From assembly GCA_964036045.1 (NCBI GenBank), contig OZ038378.1, positions 142,228,001-142,292,000 of the forward strand: 64,000 nt of DNA. Reading direction: 5' to 3'. Below are positions 2,059-51,364 of this stretch, in pieces (the first letter of the stretch is position 1; the number at the start of each line of letters is the position of its first letter). The notes under the pieces are model-generated. The model ran no database searches. It saw only the letters and a program-made list of their open reading frames with translations, and was not told the DNA's origin. The stretch comes from Eutreptiella sp. 'Long Island Sound 2002' (Eukaryota > Protista > Euglenida). The translations under genes and the position numbers were made by a program.

Positions 2059-2142
2059 CGCGAGCCTTGAGGGTTTGCAATGTAGAGTTCGTCTCCAGCG
2101 CCTTGCCCAGCGCAGCCCCTCCTTCCTTTCCGATTTTGTTGT
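2059..2142 (-). CDS. LRR exon 14 (type 1): (Y)NKIGKEGGAALGKALETNSTLQTLKAR
   Basis: 84 bp, CAG|...|GTATGT, phase 1-1. Downstream exons are not identified in the window. Confidence 0.88.
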
Positions 2143-3822
2143 CTGCATGTGTGCGTGTGGCTGTGCACACGCAGGTCTCCACAAACGCGCCCCGCTGCAC
2201 TCCACCAACACACGACCAACGGCGTCACCACCGGTCAGCCCATTCCACGCAATGCTCAGCGTTTCGCCCACTCAACACAACACCATTCCTTATGTTGTGG
2301 GGCATGCCACAAAACAGTGTACGCCCACATCGCCCTTTACACGCCCTTCACACACCCGTCGGACAGCTCCATCCAACAACCCAACACCGCGGCTTGTGAG
2401 GGAGCGGCCAGCATGTGCATGGCTACGGGGGGCGGGGGGGGCTGTGCGGCAGAGGGACGGTCCGTTCCAGCCCCCTCCCCAGTGCTCGACCAATGCCAGA
2501 TACAACGACCGGGCGGCAGTGCAGTCGCAGGAGGTGTTCGAGCCGCATTCTGCACCAGCACAGCACACACGCAAACGCAATGACAGGGCAACGCCACAAT
2601 AATGATTTGGTCACAAGTTCAGAGGGAGGGAGACTGTTAGGCAGTCAGAGGCTGCTTGCGTTAAGCGTTGATGGCTGAGACACAAACAACCACCCGGCGG
2701 CAGATTCCCGTGCTTCTCAGTTTTGAGGAGGAATGTCGGACAACAATACGAATGGAGACGGTAGAAATGGATGTCGAGCACAACGGGAAATCGATTGTTT
2801 TACGAATGTCCCAGGCAATGGCCGTGTGGTCCGGGTGCTACTTCGCATGTGTCGCGTGTACCTGCCTGAACAACTGCACATATGTTTGCCGTTGGAATCA
2901 CTGCATGCTCTTGTTCATAGTCGCCCTCCGGCGACGGATTTCTTGCCGGGCGCTGGGGTCGGGGCCCCGGCGCCGCCAGACCTCCGTTCCTAAACTTCAA
3001 GTAGAATACATCCGAGGGGGGGTAAGAAATTAGGACCCCCAAAACTACGGCAATCTGCCGTCTTGTCGCCCCTAGTTTTGTGCAGAATGAGCTGTAGATT
3101 TCGAATCTGCCTGTCTGATCCCCAAAAGCAGGCCAAAATCGTGATTTCCCTGGCGAAATCGGCCGAATTTCGTGAATCGCAGTCGGAAATCGGGTCCAGC
3201 GCCCCCCAATCTGTGGGATCCCCCTCCGTTCTGCACGATTTCCGAGCAGTTTCGCAGGATCCAGGAATTATTGACCCAACGAGGACCCGCTCCCACCCCA
3301 CCGAGGCAAAAGCTGTTGTCCCGCAGTGAGATTGTGGATAGCTTTTGTTACTTGAGAATTCAAAGGCAACAATGAAAGAAACAATGAAAGATCTGTTGCG
3401 TTTGTCGGCTGTTGCATTGATGTACAATGTATTTGTGTTCCGATTGTTTGTTTCCAGGCTGTCCCGTAGTCTACAGCTGATCATTGGTTGCCGCAGCAAA
3501 AAGGTTGGTGCAGCAGGGAGGTTTGCCGTTCAGCTGTATTTAGCCGCTGTGAGGTTTACAAACTTAGCGCCAGATGTGTCGCGTTCGTCGTCTGATGCAT
3601 TGATACACACTGCATTTGTGTTTCAACTGTTTGCCGTCCTGTAGCCTACAGCTGCTCATTGGTTGCCGCAGCCAAAACTTTGGTGCCGCAGGGAAGTTTG
3701 CTATTCAGTTTGATTGGACTCTGTTCAGGTCTGTTTTCGGCTTTGTGTCACTGCAATTGTGTTTGCATGCAAGACCTCCTGTTCGTGGTTGCTTGCATTT
3801 CCTGTGTTGCTCAGAAGGGTCG

Positions 3823-3990
3823 TGGGTTCCGTCCGTTACACTATGTGAGTTCCGTGGGGTCCAGAAGTCCACCGATTTTGCTCACCGGGCCGCTGCGTTG
3901 CGCAGGAGTTCAAGAGTGACCAGACGTCGGCCGTGCAGGTGATCCAGGATGCGACCGAGGCGTATTTGGTTGGGCTGTTTGCAGGTGCTC
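3823..3990 (+). pseudogene. H3: Histone H3 fragment (frameshifted, with deletions)
   Basis: WVPSVTLCEFRGVQKSTDF, then a frameshift to [28 protein letters not shown]. This aligns to H3 RPGTVALREIRRYQKSTEL...[31 protein letters not shown]. Confidence 0.85.
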
Positions 3991-4295
3991 TTCCAGTCTT
4001 GCATTGCACAGGGCCCCGGTGAAGGCAGTGAAAAATCCTTGTATTTCATGTCAGTTTCGTGTGTTGTTTTTAGCTTCCGGTTTTCTTTGTGCATTCTTTT
4101 GGGGTGAGCCTTTGTTGTAGGTTCCATTTTCGAGTTGCGGTTGTGTTTGGGTGTTGTTTTGTGTTTAATTTCCAGTTGGGAGGTTGCTGGGTTGAGGCTG
4201 GTTTGGGGTTCGAGTTTGGTTTGCAGTTTTGAGTTGCAGTTCAGGTTTGAGGTTTCAGGTTGGAGATTGAGTTCCGGTTCAGGGTGAGTTACGAG

Positions 4296-4298
<3 letters not shown>

Positions 4299-4354
<56 letters not shown>
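4299..4354. repeat. (GT)n microsatellite
   Basis: Pure GT run seen directly. Confidence 0.99.
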
Positions 4355-4357
<3 letters not shown>

Positions 4358-5105
4358 GAATGTGCTTGTAGGTGAGTTACGAGTGTGCTTGTGTTGCGGA
4401 TGTGCCGGTGGGTGAGTTACGAGTGTGATGGTGTTACGAATCTGCCTGTGGGTGAGTTACGAGTGTGTGGGTGCCACGATTGTGCTTGTGGGTGAGTTAC
4501 GAGTGTGTGGGCGTTACGATTGTGCCTGTGGGTGAGTTACGCGTGTGCTTGTGTCACGAATGTGCTTGTGGGTGAGTTCCGAGTGTGTTTGTGTTACGAT
4601 GGTGCCTGTGGGTGAGTTACGAGCGTGCTTGTGTTACGAGTGTGCCTGTGGGTGAGTTACGCGTGTGCTTGTGTTACGAATGTGCCTGTGGGTGAGTTCC
4701 GAGTGTGTTTGTGTTACGATGGTGCCTGTGGGCGAGTTACGAGTGTATTGGTGCTACGAATGTGCCTGTGGGTGAGTTCCGAGTGTGTTTGTGTTACGAT
4801 GGTGCCTGTGGGTGAGTTACGAGCGTGCTTGTGTTACCAATGTGCCTCTGGGTGAGTTACGAGCGTGCTTGTGTTACGATGGTGCCTGTGGGCGAGTTAC
4901 GAGTGTATTGGTGCTACGAATGTGCCTGTGGGTGAGTGACGAGTGTGTTGGTGCTACGAATGTTCCTGTGGGTGAGTTACGAGTGTGGTTGTGTTACCAA
5001 TTTGCCTCTGGGTGAGACACGAGCGTGCTTGTGTTAGGAATGTGCTTGTGAGTCAGTTCGAGTGTGTTTGTGCTACGAATGTGCCTGTGGGTGAGTTACG
5101 AGTGC
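4355..5105. repeat. ~40-bp minisatellite (GTGGGTGAGTTACGAGTGTG...), roughly 18-19 units
   Basis: GGTGAGTTAC recurs at 40-bp intervals (4451, 4491, 4531, 4571, 4611...). Confidence 0.95.
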
Positions 5106-5119
5106 ATAGGTGTTTGTCT

Positions 5120-5300
5120 AGTGCGATCGTTCTGATGTGTCTGTGTCATTTGCATCTGTGGCTGTCATTTGCGATCGTTCTGATGTGTCTGTGTCATTTC
5201 CATCTGTGGCTGTCATTTGCGATCGTTCTGATGTGTCTGTGTCATTTCCATCTGTGGCTGCCATTTGCCTCTGTGCCTGTCATTTGCATCTGTGTCTGTC
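5120..5300. repeat. ~48-bp tandem repeat, about 3 units (GCGATCGTTCTGATGTGTCTGTGTCATTT...)
   Basis: The unit restarts near 5122, 5171 and 5219. Confidence 0.9.
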
Positions 5301-6309
5301 CCAGTGTCTCCCTCCATCCATGCCCTTTCTCTCTTCTCTCAGGTGCAACGTAAGGTGTGAAGTCAGGTTGTCAGTTTTTGCTTTTTCTTGTTGTTTTGCC
5401 TGCGCCTGGTGGCGGTTTTTGGTTTTGGTTGGTGGTTTGGGTTCAAGTTTAGTTTCTGGTTAGTGTCCCGAGGCTTGGTGGGTTGGGGACTTTGGGCTTT
5501 GGTGCTCGGTGGGAGTGTCTTCGTTGGTTTGGTTTGAATTGGGAGTTTGGTGTAGAAGGTAAGCGGGTCAGGGATGTGGGTGCTTGCTGGCTTTGTGGGT
5601 ATGTTGGTGACTTGGGCCTGGGGGTTTGGTGGGCTTGGGATTTCAGAAAGAGGCCCTCCTGGGTTGTAACAAATATTCTTTTTGCAAGACAACACTTCAA
5701 GGAAAGTTTTTGGACAAAAAAATGACCGGTGAACGCAACAAAAATCTGATTTCCAGGGAAAAAGTTTCTTGGAATATTTTGGACCACAAAGTGCTCGATG
5801 AAATGTTTTTTGATCCAAAATGTTTTCAGGCAAATTGGTTTGCAGATTGGCTCATTTGGTTTCGGTTGTGATGGTTTTATTTTTGTCTTTGCCCCCGTGT
5901 GACCCGCCCATACCCACCTGCCCACACATGGTCATGCACAGGTGCACACAGTTGTAGAAGATTTCATTTTGGACAGAGAGAGTGACTGATTGCAATGGAT
6001 TTCCAGTGGAAATGAAGTAGTACAAACATGGCAAGGAAACCGAGTATGATTAGGCACCGGGTGCAATGCATTGTGAAGTGATTTTTGGTGGCCACGAAGA
6101 AGTATTGCAAACAAGGGAAAATAAGGAGAGCCCAAAAAAATGTTCCGCATTCATTTTTCAAACACAATTAAAGGGGACACACATTGGAAGCATGCATAGA
6201 TGTTGCATGGATGGGGTTGAGGGTGTGTCTAGTAGCTTCGGGCTAATGGGGGAAGTTTGGGGAAAGTTGGTGATGCTTGGGGTAGCATTTGGGTTGCCTA
6301 GGATATTTT

Positions 6310-8604: not shown

Positions 8605-8688
8605 AAGAAAGGCCAAGGCTTGTCAATGTGGTGTTGTTTTTCAACGCCGTCCCAAGTGCTTGTCCACCAGATGAGCCTAGTCCAATCT
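8605..8688 (-). CDS. LRR exon 13 (type 2): (K)IGLGSSGGQALGTALKNNTTLTSLGLS
   Basis: 84 bp, CAG|...|GTATGT, phase 1-1. Confidence 0.75.
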
Positions 8689-10379: not shown

Positions 10380-10463
10380 TGCGAACATCGAGGGTTTGCA
10401 ACGTAGAGTTCGTCTCAAGCGCCTTGCCCAGCGCAGCCCCTCCATCATCTCCGATTTTGTTCA
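10380..10463 (-). CDS. LRR exon 12 (type 1): (L)NKIGDDGGAALGKALETNSTLQTLDVR
   Basis: 84 bp, CAG|...|GTATGT, phase 1-1, LRR consensus. Confidence 0.92.
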
Positions 10464-11565: not shown

Positions 11566-11649
11566 AAGAAAGGTCAAGGCTTGTCAATGTGGTGTTGTTT
11601 TCCAACGCCGTCCCAAGTGCTTGTCCACCAGATGAGCCTAGTCCAATCT
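11566..11649 (-). CDS. LRR exon 11 (type 2): (E)IGLGSSGGQALGTALENNTTLTSLDLS
   Basis: 84 bp, CAG|...|GTATGT, phase 1-1. Confidence 0.75.
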
Positions 11650-15145: not shown

Positions 15146-15229
15146 CCCTAACATTGAGGGTTTGCAACGTAGAGTTCGTCTCCAGGGACTTGACCAGCGC
15201 AGCCCCTCCATCATCTCCGATGGCGTTGT
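15146..15229 (-). CDS. LRR exon 10 (type 1): (D)NAIGDDGGAALVKSLETNSTLQTLNVR
   Basis: 84 bp, CAG|...|GTATGT, phase 1-1, LRR consensus. Confidence 0.92.
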
Positions 15230-17439
15230 CTGCATGTGTGCGTGTGGCTGTGCACACGCAGGTCCCCACAAACGCGCCCCGCTGCGCTCCACCAACACAC
15301 GACCAACGGCGTCACCACCGGTCAGCCCATTCCACGCAATGCTCAGCGTTTCGCCCACCCAACAGAACACCATTCCTTATGTTGTGGGGCATGCCACAAA
15401 ACAGTGTACGCCCACAACGCCCTTTACACGCCCTTCACACACCCGTCGGACAGCTCCATCCAACAACCCAACACCGCGGCTTGTGAGGGAGCGACCGGCA
15501 TGTGCATGGCTACGGGGGGGCGGGGGGGCTGTGCAGCAGAGGGACGGTCCGTTCCAGCCCCCTCCCCAGTGCTCGACCAATGCCAGAAACAACGACCGGG
15601 CGGCAGTGCAGTCGCAGGAGGTGTTCGAGCCGCATTCTGCACCAGCACAGCACACACGCAAACGCAATGACAGGGCAACGCCACAACACAGTGATTGGGT
15701 CACAAGTTCAGAGGGAGGGAGACTGTTAGGCTGTCAGAGGCTGCTTGTGCTAACCGTTGATGGCTGAGACGCAAACAACCACCGGGCGGCAGATTCCCGT
15801 GCTTCTCAGTTTTGAGGAGGAATGTCGGACAACGATACGAATGGAAACGGTAGAAATGGATGTCGAGCACATCAGGAAATCAATTGCTTTATGAATGTCC
15901 CAGGCAATGGCCGTGTGCTCCTGGTGCTACGCCCTCCCTCACTCCCAGCGGAGATGCCACCACGTTGCTGATTGGGCAGTATTCAGCAGAGCACAAGAAA
16001 CGTTACAACGGCATCAACCAGTACTAAATCTGGATTTCTGGATTGACCATTAATGCCCGTCTCGTTGACTTCTTCTGGCAAACTCAAGTGTAAGAGTGTT
16101 CCTGACCACAGTGCAGTGCATTCATGCCATGCGGGTGACATATATCTTCCGAAGTGTCCCATGATGCTCGGGGTCAAACACTCTGGGAACGTGGTAACGG
16201 CAGTATGGGGGTCGCCCGGCTGAACCTGTTTTGGTGATGCCGGAGCAGAGAGGGTCCCCTGAAGAGGACACTCGGGTGGGTGAAGGGTAAGGGATTGTGC
16301 ATTCCTGCGTTCCCTGTGGTGCTTTGAGGTATTTGGGGTGAGGTACCAGGAGGGCAGTTGGGGAGTCACGACCGCTATAAGGCAGTGCACACTGGCACAC
16401 ATCCCAGGGCCCAGGCATGCACCAGCGAGTGCTCCGGCCACTGACGAGCAACAGCCTGACCTTCCATTCGGTGGGAGGGGCAAACTCCAATGCTTGGCCA
16501 CAAGCCCTAATAACTGGATACCCACTGACACGCACCACAACGTACAGGTCTGCCTGCGAGTCTTGTGAGACATGGGGCGTGACCGCATGTGTCGCAAGCG
16601 ACTGAAAGGCTCACGCACCATCGCCCGTCACCAGCGCAGAGGAGGTGGGCCATCAGACAGATACGACTGCCGTACACCAGAAGTAACAAACAGCACATCC
16701 CTGTCATTCTGATGGCCGACCCCGTCACACGCCATTCCCATTGCAAGGACAGCAGTACACAGCATTGCCCCACTCGCGTGTCTCATGCAACCGACACGTT
16801 GTGTGTGAGAGGCAACCCCTACACTTGGCAATTCCCAATCTCAGTCCATTATGCCACCACATCTCATGGCCTCCCTAGTAGTGTAACGGCATCCTCCATT
16901 AGCCCCAAAGTACTATTTTCCGGGCCCCTTGGCGCGCTTAGCACACACAACGACACACGCTGCTCGTGGCGTGGCCCCCGTATCGCGGGCGCCGAAGGCC
17001 ACACCGGTCCTGTTCCTGGCACCATGTTGCCCCTCCCCCCTCTGACCTGCAGCCCACTGCAAACGCCAGCCCCTGGGGACTGCAAAGCGGTACGGCAGCC
17101 TGACTGCAGGGAAGGCTTCGGGGGGGGGGGGGTAAGTGGGGGAGGGGGGAGGGTTGTGGGGGTTCCACTTTCAGGTTGTGATGCGCCTGTGGAGAGTTGA
17201 GTGACCTGCACTGTAAGTTTAGTGGGATGCCTTGTAGTACACCTGGTGTCCATTGCAGGTGTGGGTGCAGGACGGGGCGCGGGGGAGGGGTCCTGGAATG
17301 AACCTTTGACGCTTTTGTTCCAGGGCTAAGCTGCTTATGTTGCCACAGGCATTGTTCTGCACCCCGTCAACTGCACTGCGCCAACCAGAACACAGGAACG
17401 AACCCGCGCCTTGTGTCTGCGTACGAGCACATCACATAC

Positions 17440-17523
17440 CGTGAACATTGAGGGTTTGCAACGTAGAGTTCGTCTCCAGGGCCTTGCCCAGCGCAGCCCC
17501 TCCTTCATCTCCGATGTCGTTCC
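17440..17523 (-). CDS. LRR exon 9 (type 1): (W)NDIGDEGGAALGKALETNSTLQTLNVH
   Basis: 84 bp, CAG|...|GTATGT, phase 1-1, LRR consensus. Confidence 0.92.
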
Positions 17524-18953
17524 CTGCATGTGTGCGTGTGGCTGTGCACACGCAGGTCCCCACAAACGCGCCCCGCTGCACTCCACCAACACACGACCAA
17601 CGGCGTCACCACCGGTCAGCCCATTCCACGCAATGCTCAGCGTTTCGCCCACTCAACACAACACCATTCCTTATGTTGTGGGGCATGCCACAAAACAGTG
17701 TACGCCCACAACGCCCTTTACACGCCCTTCACACGCCCGTCGGACAGCTCCATCCAACAACCCAACACCGCGGCTTGTGAGGGAGCGGCCGGCATGTGCA
17801 TGGCTACGGGGGGCGGGGCCCTGTGCGGCAGAGGGACGGTCCGTTCCAGCCCCATCCCCAGTGCTCGACCAATGCCAGAAACAACGACCGGGCGGCAGTG
17901 CAGTCGCAGGAGGTGTTCGAGCCACATTCTGCACCAGCACAGCACACACGCAAACGCGTTGACAGGGCAACGCCACAACACAGTGATTGGGTCACAAGTT
18001 CAGAGGGAGGGAGACTGTTAGGCTGTCAGAGGCTGCTTGCGCTAACCGTTGATGGCTGAGACACAAACAACCACCGGGCGGCAGATTCCCGTCCTTCTCA
18101 GTTTTGAGGAGGAATGTCGGACAACAATACGAATGGAGACGGTAGAAATGGATGTCGAGCACACCAGGAAATTAATAGACTTATGAATGTCCCAGGCAAT
18201 GGCCGTGTGCTCCTGGTGCTACTTCGCACTGTATCGCCTGTACCTGCCTGAAAAACTGCACATATGTTTGCCGTCGGAATCACTGCACGCTCTTGTTCAG
18301 TCCATTCACACTGACCACAGCACAGCGTAACATTCCTCGGCAGAGCAGGGAAACCATCGGGGCTGCCTACCAGCCAAGTTCAGCAGTTGTAGACCACCCG
18401 CCCACCAGTACACGGAATTCCATTCACCCACTGGCCCCAATGTGGGTTGCGATCTCGCCCAGGCGCTCCACTACTGCTTGGGCCTTCACATATCTCCGCC
18501 CCCTTTTGCAATCTGCCACAATACCCAAACATATGCCACAGAATGGGGCTGCCCTGGATGGGGTTTCGGCATATTAGGTCTTGCGCAAGATCTCAAACCG
18601 GAAAACCGCATTCTAAACCACAAGTCAATGCTTTTGTGCAATGGGAAGGCCCAAATGCCAAGAAGGAACGTTAACCCGTGCAGGACTGGGGATGGGTGGT
18701 GCCCGCGCAAACCACACACACAGTACCCACACCCCTGAACCGTTCCCAATGCCTAAGCAATCCCTGGCACCTCCAAATGTCTGCCACTGTCCCCCATCCG
18801 AGCCCACACCCCTAAACCCCTGCTCATCACCCATCTCACCACTGCCCACCACAACTACAGTCCACACCTCCCCCATGCCTCTTCAAAGGCCCCTCCCCAC
18901 ACCACACCACCAACACCTACACACATGCCTCTCTCTACATCCACAAAACATAC

Positions 18954-19037
18954 AAGAAAGGCCAAGGCTTGTCAATGTGGTGTTGTTTTTCAACGCCGTC
19001 CCAAGTGCTTGTCCACCAGATGAGCCTAGTCCAATCT
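18954..19037 (-). CDS. LRR exon 8 (type 2): (E)IGLGSSGGQALGTALKNNTTLTSLGLS
   Basis: 84 bp, CATTCAG| acceptor and |GTATGT donor, phase 1-1. LRR consensus except that the conserved Asn is Ile (ATT). Confidence 0.75.
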
Positions 19038-21512
19038 CTGAATGTGTGGCGATGGGGAATGGAGAGGGGGCGTGCACACCGCACATCACAACGTCCCCTC
19101 CCTCAAACCGCACGCAGCACGTCCGCCACAGCGCCCCCCATCAGAAGCGCCGCTTTCCCCTTCCCAAACGCTTGCGCACACCGAACGCCCACAGCCACAC
19201 ACCACGGCCACGGCCATGTGCCAAGGGGCCTGCCCATCCCCCATTCCCTCATCACACCCCTCCACACTCCAGTCCTCGTCCGCCGCCACCAACGCCGCGG
19301 GGACTCCACAGCTGGTCCCAGTGCTACGCCGTGCCCGTCCCACAAAACCATGAATCGAAAAACGGGGGGATGAAGGATGAAGGGGGTCAGGCTGCAGTGC
19401 CTCACAAACAAAAGCGGACAAAAGCACATCCAGCTCAACGGTGCTATGGACGGCTCGAGAAGATGCACAACCGCAGCACAACACAAACCCACTGGTGTGT
19501 GAAATGCATATAACACGTCTTCGCTCTACGCGGCGGACGCCTCAACGCTTCCTAAATCCACCGCACTCCTCTGCTGTGGCAACCGTCACCGTACACTGTG
19601 TCGCCTGCACCTGCCAGAACCACTGCACATGTGTTTGCCGATGAAATCACTGCAAGGCCTTGTTCCGTCTGTCCACACTGACCACACCACAGCGTACAAT
19701 TCCTTTGCAGAGTAGCGAAGGCGCACGCATGTGCGCATGTCGGAAGCACCAGGCCTTTGCTAATTCCTTGGTGAACCATCGAGGCTGCCTACCAGCCAAG
19801 TTCAGCCCTCGGAGACCACCCGCACACCAGGACATAAAATTCGATTCACCCACTGGCCGCCATGTGGCGCATTCTCGATCGATGACCAGTTCTACCCCCC
19901 AGGCGCTCCACTACTGCTAGACCCTTCACATACCTCCGCCCCCATGCGTGTGGTGTGCGGGGGCACCACCAGTCCCCAGGCCCGCAGGAGTAAATGTTGA
20001 GTTCTTGCATTTGGCCCATGCCATTTCACAAAAGCATTGACTTGTGGTTTACAATGCGGTTTTTCGGTTTGAAAAATCGACATGCAAAAACGACATGCCC
20101 ATACCCCATCAAGTGAAGCCCCATTCTGTGGCATAGGTTTTGGTGTTGTCAAAATATACACGCACAGTACCCCCACGGCCCATGGCCCAATATCCCCACA
20201 CCCCCAAATCGTTCCCAATACCTAAGCAATCCCTGGCACCTCCGAGTAGCAGAAAGGGTATCTGAAGGGGGGTATCTGACGTCGTACCCATTGGTACGCT
20301 CCTGGTGTGGGTGAGGGGCTTTGCATGCTTTTTGAGCAGGCACTGCACAGGGCGTCGGAGTGACAGAAGCGGTGGGCGTTAGTTTAATGGTTCACGTGTT
20401 TGATGGGGTGCTGGTTGGTGTGCCTGTGGAAGTGTGCGTTGGGATGCCTGTAGAACTCTCTGTGGATGTGCCGCTTGGTGGGTCTGTTGAGGATCCGGTT
20501 GAGAGGACTTTCAGGGTATTCGTCGGGCTGGTTGTTTGGGTCGGAAAAGCGGTGTTCGTTGAAGTGGGAGTTGCACTTCGAGCCTGGGGATACCCACTGA
20601 CACGCACCACAACGTACAGGTCTGCCTGCGAGTCTTGTGAGACATGGGGCCAGACCGCATGTGTCGCAAGCGACTGAAAGGCTCACGCACCATCGCCCGT
20701 CACCAGCGCAGAGGAGGTGGGCCATCAGACAGATACGACTGTCGTACACCAGAAGTAACAAACAGCACATCCCCGTCATTCTGATGGCCGACCCCGTCAC
20801 ACGCCATTCCCATTGCAAGGACAGCAGTACACAGCATTGCCCCACTCGCGTGTCTCATGCAACCGACATGTTGTGTGTGAGAGGCAACCCCTACACTTGG
20901 CGATTCCCAATCTCAGTCCATTATGCCACCACATCTCATGGCCTCCCCAGGGTAGTGTAACGGCATCCTCCATTAGCCCCAAAATACTATTTCCCGGGCC
21001 CCTTGGCGCGCTTAGCACGCACAACGACACACGCTGCTCGTGGCGGGGTCCCCATATCGCGGGCGCCGAAGGCCACACCGGTCCTGTTCCTGGCACCATG
21101 TTGCCCCTCCCCCCTCTGACCTGCAGCGCACTGCAAACGCCAGCCCCTGGGGACTGCAAAGCGGTACGGCAGCCTGACTGCAGGAGAGGCTTCGGGGGGG
21201 GGGGGTAAGTGGGGGAGGGGGGAGGGTTGTGGGGGTTCCACTTTCAGGTTGTGATGCGCCTGTGAACAGTTGAGTGACCTGCACTGTAAGTTTAGTGGGA
21301 TGCCTTGTAGTACACCTGGTGTCCATTGCAGGTGCGGGTGCAGGACGGGGCGCGGGGGAGGGGTCCTGGAATCAACCTTTGACGCTTTTGTTCCGGGGCT
21401 AAGCTGCTTATGTTGCCACAGGCATTGTTCTGCACCCCGTCAACTGCACTGCGCCAACCAGAACACAGGAACGAACCCGCGCCTTGTGTCTGCGTACGAG
21501 CACATCACATAC

Positions 21513-21596
21513 CGCTAACATCGAGGGTTTGCAACGTAGAGTTCTTCTCCAGGGCCTTGCCCAGCGCAGCCCCTCCTTCGCTTCCGATTTTGTTGT
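21513..21596 (-). CDS. LRR exon 7 (type 1): (D)NKIGSEGGAALGKALEKNSTLQTLDVS
   Basis: 84 bp, CAG|...|GTATGT, phase 1-1, LRR consensus. Confidence 0.92.
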
Positions 21597-23132
21597 CTGC
21601 ATGTGTGCGTGTGGCTGTGCACACGCAGGTCCCCACAAACGTGCCCCGCTGCACTCCACCAACACACGACCAACGGCGTCACCACCGGTCAGCCCATTCC
21701 ACGCAATGCTCAGCGTTTCGCCCACCCAACAGAACACCATTCCTTATGTTGTGGGGCATGCCACAAAACAGTGTACGCCCACAACGCCCTTTACACACCC
21801 TTCACACGCCCGTCGGACAGCTCCATCCAACAACCCAACACCGCGGCTTGTGAGGGAGCGGCCGGCATGTGCATGGCTACGGGGGGGCGGGGGGGCTGTG
21901 CAGCAGAGGGACGGTCCGTTCCAGCCCCATCCCCAGTGCTCGACCAATGCCAGAAACAACGACCGGGCGGCAGTGCAGTCGCAGGAGGTGTTCGAGCCGC
22001 ATTCTGCACCAGCACAGCACACACGCAAACGCAATGACAGGGCAACGCCACAACACAGTGATTGGGTCACAAGTTCAGAGGGAGGGAGACTGTTGGGCAG
22101 TCAGAGGCTGCTTGCGCTAACCGTTGATGGCTGAGACACAAACAACCACCGGGCGGCAGATTCCCGTGCTTCTCAGTTTTGAGGAGGAATGTCGGACAGC
22201 AATACAAATGGAGACGGTGGAAATGGATGTCGAGCACATCAGGAAATCGATTGCTTTATGGATGTCCCAGGCAATGGTCGTGTGGTCCTGGTGCTACTTC
22301 GCACTGTGCCGCCGGCGCAAGGGCAGAGGCGGTACTCCCCATCAGCCCACACTGCGCATGGAACCCGAGGCCACACACCGCGGCCACGGCCATGTGCCAA
22401 GGGGCCTTCCCATCCCCCATTCCCTCATCACACCCCTCCACACTCCAGTCCTCGTCCGCCGCCGCCAACGCCGCGGGGACTCCACAGCTGGTCCCAGTGC
22501 TACGCCGTGCCCGTCCCACAAAACCATGAATCGAAAAACGGGGGGATGAAGGATGAAGGGGGTCAGGCTGCAGTGCCTCACAAACAAAAGCGGACAAAAG
22601 CACATCCAGCTCAACGGTGCTATGGACGGCTCGAGAAGATGCACAACCGCAGCACAACACAAACCCACTGGTGTGTGAAATGCATATAACACGTCTTCGC
22701 TCTACGTGGCGGACGCCTCAACGCTTCCTAAATCCACCGCACTCCTCTGCTGTGGCAACCGTCACCGTACACTGTGTCGCCTGCACCTGCCAGAACCACT
22801 GCACATGTGTTTGCCGATGAAATCACTGCAAGGCCTTGTTCCGTCTGTCCACACTGACCACGGCACAGCGTACAATTCCTTTGCAGAGTGGCAGGAACAA
22901 TCTTACACTTGACTTTGCCAGAAGAATGCGGCGAGATGGGCGTTAATGCAGGTGCGGGTGCAGGACGGGGCGCGGGGGAGGGGTCCTGGAATGAACCCTT
23001 GACGCTTTTGTTCCGGGGCTAAGCTGCTTATGTTGCCACAGGCATTGTTCTGCACCCCGTCAACTGCACTGCGCCAACCAGAACACAGGAACGAACCCGC
23101 ACCTTGTGTCTGCGTACAAGCACATCACATAC

Positions 23133-23216
23133 CCCTAACATCGAGGGTTTGCAACGTAGAGTTCTTCTCCAGGGCCTTGCCCAGCGCAGCCCCTCCTTCG
23201 CTTCCGATTTTGTTGT
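23133..23216 (-). CDS. LRR exon 6 (type 1): (D)NKIGSEGGAALGKALEKNSTLQTLDVR
   Basis: 84 bp, CAG|...|GTATGT, phase 1-1, LRR consensus. Confidence 0.92.
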
Positions 23217-25281
23217 CTGCATGTGTGCGTGTGGCTGTGCACACGCAGGTCCCCACAAACGTGCCCCGCTGCACTCCACCAACACACGACCAACGGTGTC
23301 AGCACCGGTCAGCCCATTCCACGCAATGCTCAGCGTTTCGCCCACTCAACACAACACCATTCCTTATGTTGTGGGGCATGCCACAAAACAGTGTACGCCC
23401 ACAACGCCCTTTACACACCCTTCACACGCCCGTTGCACAGCTCCATCCAACAACCCAACACCGCGGCTTGTGAGGGAGCGGCCGGCATGTGCATGGCTAC
23501 GGGGAGGGGGGGGGGGGGGGCTGTGTAGCAGAGGGACGGTCCGTTCCAGCCCCCTCCCCAGTGCTCGACCAATGCCAGAAACAACGAGACGGTAGAAATG
23601 GATGTCGAGCACATCAGGAAATCGATTGCTTTGTGAATGTCGTAGGCGATGGCCGTGTGGTCCTGGTGCTACTTCGCACTGTGCCGCCAGCACAAGGGCA
23701 GAGGCTGTACTCCCCATCAGCCCACACTGCGCATGGAACCCGAGGCCACACACCGCGGCCACGGCCATGTGCCAAGGGGCGTGCCCATCCCCCATTCCCT
23801 CATCACACCCCTCCACACTCCAGTCCTCGTCCGCCGCCGCCAACGCCGCGGGGACTCCACAGCTGGTCCCAGTGCTACGCCGTGCCCGTCCCACAAAACC
23901 ATGAATCGCAAAACAGGGGGATGAAGGATGAAGGGGGTCAGGCTGCAGTGCCTCACAAACAAAAGCGGACAAAAGCACATCCAGCTCAACGGTGCTATGG
24001 ACGGCTCGAGAAGATGCACAACCGCAGCACAACACAAACCCACTGGTGTGTGAAATGCATATAACACGTCTTCGCTCTACACGGCGGACGCCTCAACGCC
24101 TCCTAAATCCACCGCACTCCTCTGCTGTGGCAACCGTCACCGTACACTGTGTCGCCTGCACCTGCCAGAACCACTGCACATGTGTTTGCCGATGGAATCA
24201 CTGCAAGGCCTTGTTCCGTCTGTCCACATTGACCACACCACAGCGTACAATTCCTTTGCAGAGTAGCGAAGGCGCACGCATGTGCGCATGTCGGAAGCAC
24301 CGGGCCTTTGCTAATTCCTTGGTGAACCATCGAGGCTGCCTACCAGCCAAGTTCAGCCCTCGGAGACCACCCGCACACCAGGACATAAAATTCGATTCAC
24401 CCACTGGCCGCCATGTGGCGCATTCTCGATCGATGACCAGTTCTACCCCCCAGGCGCTCCACTACTGCTAGACCCTTCACATACCTCCACCCCCATGCGT
24501 GTGGTGTGCGGGGGCACCACCAGTCCCCAGGCCCGCAGGAGTAAATGTTGAGTTCTTGCATTTGGCCCATGCCATTTCACAAAAGCATTGACTTGTGGTT
24601 TACAATGCGGTTTTTCGGTTTGAAAAATCGACATGCAAAAACGACATGCCCATACCCCATCAAGTGAAGCCCCATTCTGTGGCATAGGTTTTGGTGTTGT
24701 CAAAATATACACGCACAGTACCCCCACGGCCCATGCCCCAATATCCCCACACCCCCAAATTGTTCCCAATACCTAAGCAATCCCTGGCACCTCCGAGTAG
24801 CAGAAAGGGTATCTGAAGGGGGGTATCTGACGTCGTACCCATTGGTACGCTCCTGGTGTGGGTGAGGGGCTTTGCATGCTTTTTGAGCAGGCACTGCACA
24901 GGGCGTCGGAGTGACAGAAGCGGTGGGCGTTAGTTTAATGGTTCACGTGTTTGATGGGGTGCTGGTTGGTGTGCTTGTGGTAGTGTGCGGGAGGGTTGTG
25001 GGGGTTCCACTTTAAGGTTGTGATGCGCCTGTGAACAGTTGAGTGACCTGCACTGTAAGTTTAGTGGGATGCCTTGTAGTACACCTGGTGTCCATTGCAG
25101 GTGCGGGTGCAGGACGGGGCGCAGGGGAGGGGTCCTGGAATCAACCTTTGACGCTTTTGTTCCGGGGCTAAGCTGCTTATGTTGCCACAGGCATTGTTCT
25201 GCACCCCGTCAACTGCACTGCGCCAACCAGAACACAGGAACGAACCCGCGCCTTGTGTCTGCGCACGAGCACATCACATAC

Positions 25282-25365
25282 CGATAAGATTGAGGGTTTG
25301 CAACGTAGAGTTCGTCTCCAGGGCCTTGCCCAGCGCAGCCCCTGCTTCATCTCCGATGGCGTTCA
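25282..25365 (-). CDS. LRR exon 5 (type 1): (V)NAIGDEAGAALGKALETNSTLQTLNLI
   Basis: 84 bp, CAG|...|GTATGT, phase 1-1, LRR consensus. Confidence 0.92.
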
Positions 25366-28300
25366 CTGCATGTGTGCGTGTGGCTGTGCACACGCAGGTC
25401 CCCACAAACGCGCCCCGCTGCACTCCACCAACACACGACCAACGGCGTCACCACCGGTCAGCCCATTCCACGCAATGCTCAGCGTTTCGCCCACTCAACA
25501 CAACACCATTCCTTATGTTGTGGGGCATGCCACAAAACAGTGTACGCCCACAACGCCCTTTACACACCCTTCACACGCCCGTTCGACAGCTCCATCCAAC
25601 AACCCAACACCGCGGCTTGTGAGGGAGCGGCCGGCATGTGCGTGGCTACGGGGAGGGGGGGGGGGGGGGGGCTGTGCAGCAGAGGGACGGTCCGTTCCAG
25701 CCCCCTCCCCAGTGCTCGACCAATGCCAGAAACAACGACCGGGCGGCAGTGCAGTCGCAGGAGGTGTTCGAGCCGCATTCTGCACCGGCACAGCACACAC
25801 GCAAACGCAATGACAGGGCAACGCCACAACACAGTGATTGGGTCACAAGTTCAGAGGGAGGGAGACTGTTGGGCAGTCAGAGGCTGCTTGCGCTAACCGT
25901 TGATGGCTGAGACACAAACAACCACCGGGCGGCAGATTCCCGTGCTTCTCAGTTTTGAGGAGGAATGTCGGACAGCAATACAAATGGAGACGGTGGAAAT
26001 GGATGTCGAGCACATCAGGAAATCGATTGCTTTATGGATGTCCCAGGCAATGGTCGTGTGGTCCTGGTGCTACTTCGCACTGTGCCGCCAGCGCAAGGGC
26101 AGAGGCTGTACTCCCCATCAGCCCACACTGCGCATGGAACCCGAGGCCACACACCGCGGCCACGGCCATGTGCCAAGGGGCCTGCCCATCCCCCATTCCC
26201 TCATCACACCCCTCCACACTCCAGTCCTCGTCCGCCGCCGCCAACGCCGCAGGGACTCCACAGCTGGTCCCAGTGCTACGCTGTGCACGTCCCACAAAAC
26301 CATGAATCGCAAAACGGGGGGATGAAGGATGAAGGGGGTCAGGCTGCAGTGCCTCACAAACAAAAGCGGACAAAAGCACATCCAGCTCAACGGTGCTATG
26401 GACGGCTCGAGAAGATGCACAACCGCAGCACAACACAAACCCACTGGTGTGTGAAATGCATATAACACGTCTTCGCTCTACACGGCGGACGCCTCAACGC
26501 TTCCTAAATCCACCGCACTCCTCTGCTGTGGCAACCGTCACCGTACACTGTGTCGCCTGCACCTGCCAGAACCACTGCACATGTGTTTGCCGATGAAATC
26601 ACTGCAAGGCCTTGTTCCGTCTGTCCACACTGACCACGGCACAGCGTACAATTCCTTTGCAGAGTAGCGAAGGCGCACGCATGTGCGCATGTCGGAAGCA
26701 CCAGGCCTTTGCTAATTCCTTGGTGAACCATCGAGGCTGCCTACCAGCCAAGTTCAGCCCTCGGAGACCACCCGCACACCAGGACATAAAATTCGATTCA
26801 CCCACTGGCCGCCATGTGGCGCATTCTCGATCGATGACCAGTTCTACCCCCCAGGCGCTCCACTACTGCTAGACCCTTCACATACCTCCGCCCCCATGCG
26901 TGTGGTGTGCGGGGGCACCACCAGTCCCCAGGCCCGCAGGAGTAAATGTTGAGTTCTTGCATTTGGCCCATGCCATTTCACAAAAGCATTGACTTGTGGT
27001 TTACAATGCGGTTTTTCGGTTTGAAAAATCGACATGCAAAAACGACATGCCCATACCCCATCAAGTGAAGCCCCATTCTGTGGCATAGGTTTTGGTGTTG
27101 TCAAAATATACACGCACAGTACCCCCACGGCCCATGCCCCAATATCCCCACACCCCCAAATCGTTCCCAATACCTAAGCAATCCCTGGCACCTCCGAGTA
27201 GCAGAAAGGGTATCTGAAGGGGGGTATCTGACGTCGTACCCATTGGTACGCTCCTGGTGTGGGTGAGGGGCTTTGCATGCTTTTTGGGCAGGCACTGCAC
27301 AGGGCGTCGGAGTGGCAGAAGCGGTGGGCGGTAGTTTGATGGTTCACGTGTTTGATGGGGTGCTGGTTGGTGTGCCTGTGGAAGTGTGCGTTGGGATGGC
27401 TGTAGAACTCTCTGTGGATGTGCCGGTTGGTGGGTCTGTTGAGGATCCGGTTGAGAGGACTTTCAGGGTATTCGTCGGGCTGGTTGTTTGGGTCGGAAAA
27501 GCAGTGTTCGTTGAAGTGGGAGTTGCACTTCGAGCCTGGGGATACCCACTGACACGCACCACAACGTACAGGTCTGCCTGCGAGTCTTGTGAGACATGGG
27601 GCGTGACCGCATGTATCGCAAGCGACTGAAAGGCTCACGCACCATCGCCCGTCACCAGCGCAGAGGAGGTGGGCCATCAGACAGATACGACTGTCGTACA
27701 CCAGAAGTAACAAACAGCACATCCCCGTCATTCTGATGGCCGACCCCGTCACACGCCATTCCCAATGCAAGGACAGCAGTACACAGCATTGCCCCACTCG
27801 CGTGTCTCATGCAACCGACATGTTGTGTGTGAGAGGCAACCCCTACACTTGGCGATTCCCAATCTCAGTCCATTATGCCACCACATCTCATGGCCTCCCC
27901 AGGGCAGTGTAACGGCATCCTCCATTAGCCCCAAAATACTATTTCCCGGGCCCCTTGGCGCGCTTAGCACGCACAACGACACACGCTGCTCGTGGCGGGG
28001 TCCCTGTATCGCGGGCGCCGAAGGCCACACCGGTCCTGTTCCTGGCACCATGTCGCCCCTCCCCCCTCTGACCTGCAGCGCACTGCAAACGCCAGCCCCT
28101 GGGGACTGCAAAGCGGTACGGCAGCCTGACTGCAGGAGAGGCTTCGGGGGGGGGGGGGGGGGGTAAGTGGGGGAGGGGGGAGGGTTGTGTGGGTTCCACT
28201 TTAAGGTTGTGATGCGCCTGTGAACAGTTGAGTGACCTGCACTGTAAGTTTAGTGGGATGCCTTGTAGTACACCTGGTGTCCATTGCAGGTGCGGGTGCA

Positions 28301-28470
28301 GGACGGGGCGCGGGGGAGGGGTCCTGGAATCAACCTTTGACGCTTTTGTTCCGGGGCTAAGCTGCTTATGTTGCCACAGGCATTGTTCTGCACCCCGTCA
28401 ACTGCACTGCGCCAACCAGAACACAGGAACGAACCCGCGCCTTGTGTCTGCGTACGAGCACATCACATAC

Positions 28471-28554
28471 CGATAAGATTGAGGGTTTGCAACGTAGAGT
28501 TCGTCTCCAGGGCCTTGCCCAGCGCAGCCCCTCCTTTATTTCCGATGCCGTTCC
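28471..28554 (-). CDS. LRR exon 4 (type 1): (R)NGIGNKGGAALGKALETNSTLQTLNLI
   Basis: 84 bp, CAG|...|GTATGT, phase 1-1, LRR consensus. Confidence 0.92.
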
Positions 28555-30765: not shown

Positions 30766-30849
30766 TGCTAAGATTGAGGGTTTGCAACGTAGAGTTCGTC
30801 TTCAGGGCCTTGCCCAGCGCAGCCCCTCCTTTATTTCCGATGCCGTTCC
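30766..30849 (-). CDS. LRR exon 3 (type 1): (G)NGIGNKGGAALGKALKTNSTLQTLNLS
   Basis: 84 bp, CAG|...|GTATGT, phase 1-1, LRR consensus. Confidence 0.92.
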
Positions 30850-33062
30850 CTGCATGTGTGCGTGTGGCTGTGCACACGCAGGTCCCCACAAACGCGCCCC
30901 GCTGCACTCCACCAACACACGACCAACGGCGTCACCACCGGTCAGCCCATTCCACGCAATGCTCAGCGTTTCGCCCACTCAACACAACACCATTCCTTAT
31001 GTTGTGGGGCATGCCACAGAACAGTGTGCGCCCACAACGCCCTTTACACACCCTTCACACACCCGTCGGACAGCTCCATCCAACAACCCAACACCGCGGC
31101 TTGTGAGGGAGCGGCCGGCATGTGCATGGCTACGGGGGGGCGGGGGGGCTGTGCGGCAGAGGGACGGTCCGTTCCAGCCCCCTCCCCAGTGCTCGACCAA
31201 TGCCAGAAACAACGACCGGGCGGCAGTGCAGTCGCAGGAGGTGTTCGAGCCGCATTCTGCACCAGCACAGCACACACGCAAACGCAATGACAGGGCAACG
31301 CCACAACACAGTGATTGGGTCACAAGTTCAGAGGGAGGGAGACTGTTAGGCTGTCAGAGGCTGCTTGCGCTAACCGTTGATGGCTGAGACGCAAACAACC
31401 ACCGGGCGGCAGATTCCCGTGCTTCTCAGTTTTGAGGAGGAATGTCGGACAGCAATACGAATGGAGACGGTGGAAATGGATGTCGAGCACATCAGGAAAT
31501 CAATTGCTTTATGAATGTCCCAGGCAATGGCCGTGTGCTCCTGGTGCTACGCCCTCCCTCACTCCCAGCGGAGATGCCACCACGTTGCTGATTGGGCAGT
31601 ATTCAGCAGAGCACAAGAAACGTTACAACGGCATCAACCAGTACTAAATCTGGCTTTCTGTATTGACCATTAATGCCCGTCTCGTTGACTTCTTCTGGCA
31701 AACTCAAGTGTAAGAGTGTTCCTGACCACAGTGCAGTGCATTCATGCCATGCGGGTGACATATATCTTCCGAAGTGTCCCATGATACTCGGGGTCAAACA
31801 CTCTGGGAACGTGGTAATGGCAGTATGGGGGTCGCCCGGCTGAACCTGTTCTGGTGATGCCGGAGCAAAGAGGGTCCCCTGAAGAGGACACTCGGGTGGG
31901 TGAAGGGTAAGGGCTTTTGCATTCCTGCGTTCCCTGTGGTGCTTTGAGGGATTTGGGGTGAAGTACCAGGAGGGCGGTTGGGGAGTCACGACCGCTATAA
32001 GGCAGTGCACACTGGCACACATCCCAGGGCCCAGGCATGCACCAGCGAGTGCTCCGGCCACTGACGAGCAACAGCCTGACCTTCCATTCGGTGGGAGGGG
32101 CAAACTCCAATGCTTGCCCACAAGCCCTAATAACGGGATACCCACTGACACGCACCACAACGTACAAGTTTGCCTGCGAGTCTTGTGAGACATGGGGCGT
32201 GACCGCATGTGTCGCAAGCGACTGAAAGGCTCACGCACCATCGCCCGTCGCCAGCGCAGAGGAGGTGGGCCATCAGACAGATACGACTGCCGTACACCAG
32301 AAGTAACAAACAGCAAATCCCCGTCATTCTGATGGCCGACCCCGTCACACGCCATTCCCATTGCAAGGACAGCAGTACACAGCATTGCCCCACTCGCGTG
32401 TCTCATGCAACCAACATGTTGTGTGTGAGAGGCAACCCCTACACTTGGCGATTCCCAATCTCAGTCCATTATGCCACCACATCTCATGGCCTCCCCAGGG
32501 CAGTGTAACGGCATCCTCCATTAGCCCCAAAGTACTATTTCCCGGGCCCCTTGGCGCGCTTAGCACGCACAACGACACACGCTGCTCGTGGCGGGGTCCC
32601 CATATCGCGGGCGCCGAAGGCCACACCGGTCCTGTTCCTGGCACCATGTCGCCCCTCCCCCCTCTGACCTGCAGCGCACTGCAAACGCCAGCCCCTGGGG
32701 ACTGCAAAGCGGTACGGCAGCCTGACTGCAGGAGAGGCTTCGGGGGGGGGGGGGGTAAGTGGGGGAGGGGGGAGGGTTGTGGGGGTTCCACTTTAAGGTT
32801 GTGATGCGCCTGTGAACAGTTGAGTGACCTGCACTGTAAGTTTAGTGGGATGCCTTGTAGTACACCTGGTGTCCATTGCAGGTGCGGGTGCAGGACGGGG
32901 CGCAGGGGAGGGGTCCTGGAATGAACCTTTGACGCTTTTGTTCCGGGGCTAAGCTGCTTATGTTGCCACAGGCATTGTTCTGCACCCCGTCAACTGCACT
33001 GCGCCAACCAGAACACAGGAACGAACCCGCGCCTTGTGTCTGCGCACGAGCACATCACATAC

Positions 33063-33146
33063 CGATAAGATTGAGGGTTTGCAACGTAGAGTTCGTCTCC
33101 AGGGCCTTGCCCAGCGCAGCCCCTCCTTCGCTTCCGATTTCGTTGT
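33063..33146 (-). CDS. LRR exon 2 (type 1): (D)NEIGSEGGAALGKALETNSTLQTLNLI
   Basis: 84 bp, CAG|...|GTATGT, phase 1-1, LRR consensus. Confidence 0.92.
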
Positions 33147-35357
33147 CTGCATGTGTGCGTGTGGCTGTGCACACGCAGGTCCCCACAAACGCGCCCCGCT
33201 GCACTCCACCAACACACGACCAACGGCGTCACCACCGGTCAGCCCATTCCACGCAATGCTCAGCGTTTCGCCCACTCAACACAACACCATTCCTTATGTT
33301 GTGGGGCATGCCACAGAACAGTGTGCGCCCACAACGCCCTTTACACACCCTTCACACACCCGTCGGACAGCTCCATCCAACAACCCAACACCGCGGCTTG
33401 TGAGGGAGCGGCCGGCATGTGCATGGCTACGGGGGGGCGGGGGGGCTGTGCAGCAGAGGGACGGTCCGTTCCAGCCCCCTCCCCAGTGCTCGACCAATGC
33501 CAGAAACAACGACCGGGCGGCAGTGCAGTCGCAGGAGGTGTTCGAGCCGCATTCTGCACCAGCACAGCACACACGCAAACGCAATGACAGGGCAACGCCA
33601 CAACACAGTGATTGGGTCACAAGTTCAGAGGGAGGGAGACTGTTAGGCTGTCAGAGGCTGCTTGCGCTAACCGTTGATGGCTGAGACGCAAACAACCACC
33701 GGGCGGCAGATTCCCGTGCTTCTCAGTTTTGAGGAGGAATGTCGGACAGCAATACGAATGGAGACGGTGGAAATGGATGTCGAGCACATCAGGAAATCAA
33801 TTGCTTTATGAATGTCCCAGGCAATGGCCGTGTGCTCCTGGTGCTACGCCCTCCCTCACTCCCAGCGGAGATGCCACCACGTTGCTGATTGGGCAGTATT
33901 CAGCAGAGCACAAGAAACGTTACAACGGCATCAACCAGTACTAAATCTGGCTTTCTGTATTGACCATTAATGCCCGTCTCGTTGACTTCTTCTGGCAAAC
34001 TCAAGTGTAAGAGTGTTCCTGACCACAGTGCAGTGCATTCATGCCATGCGGGTGACATATATCTTCCGAAGTGTCCCATGATACTCGGGGTCAAACACTC
34101 TGGGAACGTGGTAATGGCAGTATGGGGGTCTCCCGGCTGAACCTGTTCTGGTGATGCCGGAGCAAAGAGGGTCCTCTGAAGAGGACACTCGGGTGGGTGA
34201 AGGGTAAGGGCTTTTGCATTCCTGCGTTCCCTGTGGTGCTTTGAGGGATTTGGGGTGAAGTACCAGGAGGGCGGTTGGGGAGTCACGACCGCTATAAGGC
34301 AGTGCACACTGGCACACATCCCAGGGCCCAGGCATGCACCAGCGAGTGCTCCGGCCACTGACGAGCAACAGCCTGACCTTCCATTCGGTGGGAGGGGCAA
34401 ACTCCAATGCTTGCCCACAAGCCCTAATAACGGGATACCCACTGACACGCACCACAACGTACAAGTTTGCCTGCGAGTCTTGTGAGACATGGGGCGTGAC
34501 CGCATGTGTCGCAAGCGACTGAAAGGCTCACGCACCATCGCCCGTCGCCAGCGCAGAGGAGGTGGGCCATCAGACAGATACGACTGCCGTACACCAGAAG
34601 TAACAAACAGCACATCCCCGTCATTCTGATGGCCGACCCCGTCACACGCCATTCCCATTGCAAGGACAGCAGTACACAGCATTGCCCCACTCGCGTGTCT
34701 CATGCAACCAACATGTTGTGTGTGAGAGGCAACCCCTACACTTGGCGATTCCCAATCTCAGTCCATTATGCCACCACATCTCATGGCCTCCCCAGGGCAG
34801 TGTAACGGCATCCTCCATTAGCCCCAAAATACTATTTCCCGGGCCCCTTGGCGCGCTTAGCACACACAACGACACACGCTGCTCGTGGCGGGGTCCCCAT
34901 ATCGCGGGCGCCGAAGGCCACACCGGTCCTGTTCCTGGCACCATGTCGCCCCTCCCCCCTCTGACCTGCAGCGCACTGCAAACGCCAGCCCCTGGGGACT
35001 GCAAAGCGGTACGGCAGCCTGACTGCAGGAGAGGCTTCGGGGGGGGGGGGTAAGTGGGGGAGGGGGGAGGGTTGTGGGGGTTCCACTTTAAGGTTGTGAT
35101 GCGCCTGTGAACAGTTGAGTGACCTGCACTGTAAGTTTAGTGGGATGCCTTGTAGTACACCTGGTGTCCATTGCAGGTGCGGGTGCAGGACGGGGCGCAG
35201 GGGAGGGGTCCTGGAATGAACCTTTGACGCTTTTGTTCCGGGGCTAAGCTGCTTATGTTGCCACAGGCATTGTTCTGCACCCCGTCAACTGCACTGCGCC
35301 AACCAGAACACAGGAACGAACCCGCGCCTTGTGTCTGCGCACGAGCACATCACATAC

Positions 35358-35441
35358 CGATAAGATTGAGGGTTTGCAACGTAGAGTTCGTCTCCAGGGC
35401 CTTGCCCAGCGCAGCCCCTCCTTTATTTCCGATTTCGTTGT
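35358..35441 (-). CDS. LRR exon 1 in transcript order (type 1): xNEIGNKGGAALGKALETNSTLQTLNLI
   Basis: 84 bp, CATGCAG| acceptor and |GTATGT donor, phase 1-1. Matches the RI/NLRC3-type consensus NxIGxxGxxALxxALxxNxxLxxLxL. Confidence 0.92.
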
Positions 35442-37302: not shown

Positions 37303-37333
<31 letters not shown>

Positions 37334-37339
37334 ACACAC
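37303..37339. repeat. (CA)n microsatellite
   Basis: Seen directly. Confidence 0.97.
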
Positions 37340-40687: not shown

Positions 40688-40737
40688 TGCTAGGCTTGGT
40701 TGATGAGGGGCACAGCCCTCATCAACCAAGCCTAGCA
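40688..40737. other. Perfect 22-bp inverted repeat with a 6-nt loop
   Basis: TGCTAGGCTTGGTTGATGAGGG-GCACAG-CCCTCATCAACCAAGCCTAGCA. Confidence 0.95.
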
Positions 40738-51247: not shown

Positions 51248-51364
51248 CTGCAATTGTCACAACCGGCTGTGTGGATGGCATGGTCCCGAAATACGTGGGA
51301 ATGGGGCTCCCGAAAAATTTTATTGCCTTCGGCAAGGCACCTTGAAGAGGGGAGAGGGACGACC

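Follow-up and report, generated by a model that had tools for sequence, protein, structure and literature searches.

The LRR-ROCO genes of the brown algae Ectocarpus and Saccharina encode one leucine-rich repeat (LRR) per exon, and they exhibit exon shuffling as well as positive selection acting at the repeat domain's concave face (PMC3341825; PMC11378527). Their exons are 72 nucleotides (nt) long and encode a 24-residue repeat, GxxPxxLxxxxxLxxLxLxxNxLx (PMC3341825). Vertebrate NLRP genes are built from 171-nt exons, each encoding two repeats of 28 and 29 residues (PMC6642158). Prokaryotic McrBC type IV restriction systems carry exchangeable N-terminal specificity domains (PMC11090510). Variable lymphocyte receptors (VLR) use non-coding cassettes as donors, which somatic cells copy into a gene that is incomplete. 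Here, we describe a tandem array of LRR exons in the euglenid Eutreptiella sp. 'Long Island Sound 2002'. It lies in a 64,000-nt stretch of contig OZ038378.1 (assembly GCA_964036045.1, positions 142,228,001 to 142,292,000), called the window below, in which positions are counted from the first letter. The array differs from the described systems in its repeat class (compared with ROCO), its module size (compared with NLRP) and the extreme youth of its whole cassettes (compared with both). It is likely to supply the ligand-binding portion of a multi-exon gene that is expressed, with at least 14 repeats of the ribonuclease inhibitor (RI) type, and to serve as a diversifying recognition module.

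Exons were identified in the window by scanning for an AG, 84 nt and a GT, with the enclosed sequence required to be open in phase 1 and to resemble an LRR. Fourteen exons passed the scan, all on the minus strand from position 35441 down to 2059, and they fall into two types (type 1, n = 11; type 2, n = 3). Every one of them is 84 nt long, bounded by AG and GT, of phase 1-1, and encodes a single repeat. Type 1 exons have the acceptor context ACACATGCAG and the donor GTATGTGA, and type 2 exons have ACACATTCAG and GTATGTTT. Splicing the 14 exons in genomic order yields 1176 nt, in which all 391 complete codons are sense codons, and this reproduces the counts of a first-pass annotation that had reported 14 such exons joining into one stop-free frame. 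No extra or degenerate exon copies were found on either strand when both exon peptides were compared with the whole window by tblastn. The G+C content of the window is 55%.

The type 1 exons, numbered along the minus strand, are exon 1 (35358-35441, NEIGNK...NLI), exon 2 (33063-33146, NEIGSE...NLI), exon 3 (30766-30849, NGIGNK...NLS), exon 4 (28471-28554, NGIGNK...NLI), exon 5 (25282-25365, NAIGDEA...NLI), exon 6 (23133-23216, NKIGSE...DVR, with a rearranged upstream intron), exon 7 (21513-21596, NKIGSE...DVS), exon 9 (17440-17523, NDIGDE...NVH), exon 10 (15146-15229, a variant with NAIGDD, the core changes G>V and A>S, and NVR), exon 12 (10380-10463, NKIGDD...DVR) and exon 14 (2059-2142, NKIGKE...KAR). 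The type 2 exons are exon 8 (18954-19037, IGLGSSGGQALGTAL...), exon 11 (11566-11649) and exon 13 (8605-8688), the last two of which were also recovered by tblastn. Exon 14 is the last in the window, and its intact GT donor indicates that the gene continues beyond it.

These exons are embedded in a tandem array of 2.3-kb intron-plus-exon cassettes on the minus strand (1-35934), delimited by self-BLAST of one unit. This unit, taken from exon 2 to exon 3, measures 2297 nt, and full or partial copies of it extend from 35934 down to 1763 with 96-100% identity over up to 2297 nt, so the earlier description of the flanking introns as almost identical is borne out. Cassette homology reaches to about 1520. 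The array begins with a truncated cassette (intron 35934-35442), its low end runs off the window, and its longer introns contain additional sequence. Units 1 and 2 are 99.5% identical, yet they exhibit three differences inside 5 nt at codons 5-6.

The cassettes also bear traces of turnover. Sequence comparison places three copies of the type 2 upstream intron, each without an exon, on the minus strand at 26146-27652, 23745-24989 and 22370-22892. The first of these is 98.7% identical to 20700-19194, and all three stop 157 nt short of the place where a type 2 exon is expected. The recurrence of this segment without its exon indicates that the array has gained and lost exons; the exon-less copies are the marks left where deletion or unequal exchange removed an exon. 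A GT-rich minisatellite (4343-5268; a 40-nt unit repeated 19 times, then a 48-nt unit repeated three times) is present in the 6.5-kb intron that separates exon 13 from exon 14, and it accounts for the marked GC and AT skew seen in the 4001-6000 bin.

Diversity in exons and introns was compared in an alignment of the 11 type 1 exons with 490 nt of upstream and 265 nt of downstream sequence; intron figures leave out the copy with the rearranged flank. Variation is concentrated in 21 hypervariable nucleotides (exon positions 1-2, 6-8, 15-20 and 75-84). At these, the mean pairwise difference is 0.385 and the minimum number of mutational events per site is 1.05, compared with 0.019 and 0.063 in the introns and 0.028 and 0.127 in the 63-nt exon core. 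The hypervariable event count is far above the intron rate (Poisson P 1.3e-19), and the core shows no clear difference from the introns (Poisson P 0.05). Segregating sites account for 18 of the 21 hypervariable nucleotides versus 154 of the 773 columns in the introns (Fisher P 4e-10), and nucleotide diversity (pi) over the whole exon is 0.118 versus 0.023 for the introns. Across the whole alignment, the 21-nt windows of highest variability begin at the first exon bases. Exon variation thus exceeds intron variation, as the first-pass annotation had held.

The residues involved are D/G/R/V/E/W/L/K/Y at the junction codon, E/G/A/K/D at codon 2, NK/SE/DE/DD/KE at codons 5-6 and NLI/NLS/DVR/DVS/NVH/NVR/KAR at codons 25-27, exactly where variable residues had been listed, and all 11 type 1 exons are distinct at the protein level. 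For six hypervariable codons (2, 5, 6, 25, 26 and 27), replacement diversity (piN) is 0.404 and silent diversity (piS) is 0.208, a ratio of 1.9 by the Nei-Gojobori method; the 21 core codons give 0.023 and 0.039 (ratio 0.6). When events at the six codons are counted by hand from the codon table, about 17 replace the residue and 1 is silent, in agreement with the earlier observation that nearly all differences change the amino acid. The expected ratio of replacement to silent change (dN/dS) above 1 is therefore seen at the variable codons, but over the whole exon (piN 0.117, piS 0.065) the test is borderline, with a probability of about 0.06 for piN <= piS in a bootstrap over codons. The decisive contrast is that with the neighbouring neutral DNA; the classical dN/dS test is only borderline.

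The history of the variants can be assessed from how they are combined. The four-gamete test is failed by 122 of 276 informative site pairs, including pairs only a few nt apart within an exon, which indicates that the units are mosaics, whether through gene conversion, recombination or repeated mutation. Many hypervariable variants differ at two or three adjacent bases. Together with the raised silent diversity, these adjacent-base changes suggest that old variants have been kept against homogenisation, rather than that fresh point mutations alone are responsible, and fresh positive selection fits the data no better than the retention of old variants does.

The repeat follows the 28-residue register L-Q-T-L-x-[LVA]-x-x-N-x-I-G-x-x-G-G-A-A-L-G-K-A-L-E-T-N-S-T. 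This fits the 28-29-residue consensus of the RI type (LRR_6), LxxLxLxx(N/C)xLxxxgoxxLxxoLxxxxx, as quoted in PMC6642158, and the array repeats appear to be RI-type repeats. Single exons match LRR_6 only below the cut-off (E 0.014-0.21), because each exon splits the motif. Among solved structures in the PDB, sequence matches are to NOD2 and to RI-like axonemal proteins, the best being LRRC34 and DRC5.

The position of the variable residues in the fold was modelled on P0009, a homologue that shares its repeat register with the array peptide. An AlphaFold model of P0009 residues 1-330 (predicted local distance difference test score, pLDDT, 89) places the strands at positions 3-7 of the motif and the helices at positions 12-25, and it matches NLRP14, NLRP3, NLRP2, NOD2 and ribonuclease inhibitor with template-modelling (TM) scores up to 0.87. 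By this model, variable positions 5 and 7 would be outward strand residues between core leucines 4 and 6. Position 8, whose codon is split, would lie at the strand end, position 10 in the ascending loop and positions 13-14 in the first helical turn, at the rim. In complexes of RI with its ligands, contacts are made by this sheet-and-loop surface. The variable sites are thus predicted to lie on the binding face, as initially proposed, in beta-strand and ascending loop and not at buried or convex positions.

Homologues were collected with a 30-column profile made from the 14 exons, which was searched against 1.84 billion proteins and gave 8545 matches at E up to 0.001 (best 1.8e-128). LRR_6 was found in every match scanned, comprising seven top matches (P0001-P0005, P0009 and P0012) and three picked for NTPase motifs (P0064, P0075 and P0112). 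In these it is joined to TIR and a STAND NTPase, to Roc or COR, to NACHT, to a protein kinase, or to RCC1 or Sel1, or else LRRs occur alone. One profile match, from the dinoflagellate Durusdinium trenchii, is named NLRC3. Among the best 150 of the 8545 matches none is close to the array gene, the closest core having three mismatches in 18 residues. Exact-pattern searches of Joint Genome Institute (JGI) metagenomes for related strains or transcripts, with one pattern across a splice junction and one in the exon core, gave 0 matches. The genes for homologues P0005 and P0144 are intronless and lie on metagenome contigs. In P0009, P0001 and P0004, homologues of other organisms, the LRR_6 repeats are near-clonal, and most of their variation falls at motif positions 5, 7, 8, 10 and 13. 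An invariant scaffold with a variable surface is therefore widespread in the LRR_6 class, even in intronless genes.

Such homologues, with near-identical repeats that vary at the x positions, would also be expected if the array encoded an ordinary interaction scaffold, that is, an axonemal, RanGAP-like or adaptor LRR protein of the RI type that undergoes concerted evolution, whose variable sites are merely unconstrained and which takes part in no arms race. The axonemal identity of LRRC34 and DRC5, the best matches among solved structures, is consistent with this explanation, as is the failure to find an effector domain within the window. However, unconstrained sites cannot outpace neutral DNA, and the hypervariable sites are approximately 20 times more diverged than the introns that surround them. 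The protein-level differences among all 11 type 1 exons and the strong excess of replacement over silent changes at the six codons are likewise at odds with mere relaxation. An ordinary scaffold is thus unlikely, although it fares better than the other alternatives considered here.

Expression was assessed in three estuarine metatranscriptome runs (X13, X8 and X7), which were found with an 84-nt exon query. A 198-nt contig from X7, mapped on 16800-19200, consists of a DVS-type exon end, the whole of exon 8 (19037-18954) and the first 47 nt of exon 9. Both exon 8 and the 47 nt of exon 9 are matched with zero mismatches, and the joint between them leaves out 1430 nt whose minus-strand ends are GT..AG. 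This joint is absent from X4, a DNA-like run that covers introns, over the same stretch. For the other two runs, contig letters left unmatched were compared with the genome. A 114-nt contig from X13 reads CTTAGCA followed by GGAACGGC, which is the joint of exon 3 to exon 4, and a 114-nt contig from X8 reads CTTATCG followed by TGAACGCC, which is the joint of exon 4 to exon 5 and includes 8 nt of the latter. The joints 3-4, 4-5 and 7-8-9 sit exactly at the predicted splice sites. Spliced transcripts are therefore present, and the junctions confirm the assembled exon order.

X7 also contains 151-nt reads identical to unique DNA at 35969-36119, which indicates that the same organism was in that sample. 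In the RNA runs, intron reads occur at about half the exon depth. The DVS-type exon end in the X7 contig is 1 nt off reference exon 7, probably at codon 17 (T instead of K), and this reflects either polymorphism among strains, the codon being a variable one at the surface, or transcription of a paralogous array. Two further candidates were set aside. X14 was rejected as RNA-seq of the organism, since introns are covered in it as by DNA. A contig from X4 that differs from exon 9 at eight hypervariable sites was rejected as an allele, since its letters are those of the exon 1 cassette, and it represents a paralogous unit with 92% likeness.

The symmetry of all exons means that the gain, loss or skipping of a repeat causes no frameshift, and any subset of these equally long phase 1-1 exons remains in frame. 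Because the codon for position 8 is split by the intron, each new exon adjacency yields a new residue there. These properties, and the recurrence of short patch variants in different combinations, would also suit a programmed diversification, whether splice-combinatorial, through exon skipping or exon choice, or VLR-like, through templated conversion. Alternative splicing of tandem LRR exons has been reported for brown-algal ROCO genes (PMC11378527) and for NLRP3 (PMC6642158). The junctions observed here, however, join only neighbouring exons in genomic order. No exon-skipping contig was seen in the three runs, which are a very thin sampling, and there is no evidence for somatic change. A programmed mechanism is thus improbable for the array. 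Least credible is a young neutral tandem amplification of a gene piece, decaying as a pseudo-array with transcripts that are noise: although a stop-free frame and intact splice sites are weak evidence for constraint at about 2% divergence, and the RNA depth is low with introns at about half exon depth, under neutral decay exon and intron should diverge to the same extent, with a replacement:silent ratio near 3:1 across the exon, whereas we observed three sharp patches (38.5% versus 2-3% elsewhere) of almost entirely replacement changes, and precise splicing.

When the array is set beside the described systems, its closest precedents are the vertebrate NLRP genes and the brown-algal ROCO genes, the latter cited correctly in the first-pass annotation as a precedent for one LRR per exon (PMC3341825). 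The ROCO genes have in common with it one repeat per exon, equal exon length, symmetric phase, intronic traces of exon gain and loss, and variable residues on the concave face, as predicted for the array. Both the ROCO genes and the array have been proposed to be fast-evolving receptors. The array differs in having an 84-nt exon and a 28-residue RI-type repeat rather than a 72-nt exon and a 24-residue repeat, and no Roc-COR domain is seen within the window, beyond which the 3' part of the gene lies. Unlike in brown-algal ROCO genes, the 2.3-kb cassettes are still nearly identical, and the contrast between exon patches and introns is directly measurable.

Vertebrate NLRP, NOD and RI genes share with the array the RI-type repeat, a constant exon length, an exon border fixed at the beta-strand and the possibility of in-frame skipping. 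Their NLRP members have two repeats per exon rather than one, and introns that, unlike those of the array, are not near-identical tandem cassettes. The NACHT domain of NLR proteins (nucleotide-binding LRR receptors) is not seen in the open frames at 36.2-48.6 kb. An invariant LRR scaffold, hypervariable concave residues and many cassettes per locus are common to VLR and the array. The array nevertheless lacks the make-up of a somatically assembled receptor of the VLR type, whose cassettes have no splice sites, since every array cassette has AG/GT sites and is spliced in genomic order.

We therefore return to the array as a diversifying recognition module. Exchange between the long introns, through unequal crossing-over and gene conversion, would allow the array to grow and shrink and would homogenise it. 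Selection would keep or promote amino-acid diversity against this homogenisation at seven residues per repeat, located at motif positions 5, 7 and 8 of LxxLxLxxN and at positions 10 and 13-14, on the concave sheet and its rim. The array may then be the recognition domain of an intracellular sensor whose ligands are variable and probably non-self, most plausibly in defence, and the signalling or effector part of the gene would lie outside the window. The first-pass annotation had proposed a diversifying recognition receptor with homogenised introns. The patterns described above support this as a candidate, and we infer a receptor or immune role by analogy.

Several observations weigh against this interpretation. 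The fold was modelled on homologue P0009 and not on the array peptide, and RI-type LRR proteins with non-immune roles exist, such as the axonemal proteins. Neither a 5' exon nor an effector domain was found within the window, and with no effector domain found, the term sensor rests on analogy. RNA support consists of three short contigs at a depth of 5-6 from environmental samples, and since one of these is 1 nt off the reference, a paralogous array could be the source of the RNA. Finally, the excess of dN over dS across the whole exon falls short of formal significance (bootstrap P about 0.06), and tree-based site models cannot be relied on at the array because of recombination.

Outside the array, the same strand carries the last large exon of an McrC-like gene at a distance of 14 kb upstream from LRR exon 1 (49892-51256, minus strand; Pfam PF10117, E 3.4e-13, profile positions 130-317 of 318). 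It has a 455-residue open frame in which PF10117 covers the first 196 residues and about 250 residues follow unmatched, and in a collection of 5.8 billion proteins it has only two relatives, both remote (30-31% identity). A 195-nt tandem repeat (4.8 copies, 51874-52806) lies upstream of this exon and is probably intronic. Tentatively, the array could be the exchangeable target-recognition module of a eukaryotic McrBC-type defence machine, fused to tandem McrB-like AAA+ GTPase domains just outside the window and working with the intron-bearing McrC-like nuclease, although we consider this doubtful. Unlike the array, known McrB specificity domains are not LRRs and bind modified nucleic acid. No McrB-type protein was found by a motif screen of the 150 best LRR homologues and a Pfam scan of the three that were flagged. 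According to Bell et al., an McrC homologue associated with animal McrB-like GTPases had yet to be reported, and eukaryotic sequences were excluded from their census (PMC11090510).

The region between the McrC-like exon and the array was also inspected. RNA mapped on 35301-41300 exhibited no joint and no listed loose end at exon 1, and Pfam domains, NACHT/NB-ARC and Roc-COR included, were absent from 20 minus-strand open frames at 36.2-48.6 kb. Most of the RNA mapped there belongs to very high-copy transcribed elements (39301-39700, 39901-40100, 36501-36700 and 38501-38700), for which word depths range from hundreds to 13,700 in X14 and are high in all three metatranscriptomes. An RNA contig at 36541 ends in a T run on the plus strand, which is a poly(A) tail on RNA from the minus strand, such as a retroposon or a 3' end would leave. 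Two minus-strand open frames, at 42462-43049 (196 residues) and 44422-44769 (116 residues), have a short motif like GxPVxAxVVG in common and no Pfam match. A 21-nt tandem repeat (5.9 copies) is found at 48613-48736. No Rfam match was obtained over the window.

To date, descriptions of LRR genes that combine one repeat per exon with a diversifying surface come mainly from brown-algal ROCO genes, and this locus exhibits the same strategy with the repeat class of animal NLRs in another microbial eukaryote. Because the array is young and its introns provide an internal neutral yardstick, the approximately 20-fold excess at seven positions can be read from one genome. If the tentative McrBC-type reading is true, the array would represent a eukaryotic innate immune receptor class distinct from both NLR and ROCO, with a specificity renewed through exon-cassette turnover and perhaps exon skipping. 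If McrB-like domains lie downstream, the array would occupy the place of the McrB target-recognition domain, and should the link to McrB- and McrC-like proteins hold, it would show a bacterial restriction machine re-aimed by a eukaryotic sensor domain. The locus offers a tractable system for the question of how single-celled eukaryotes generate recognition diversity.

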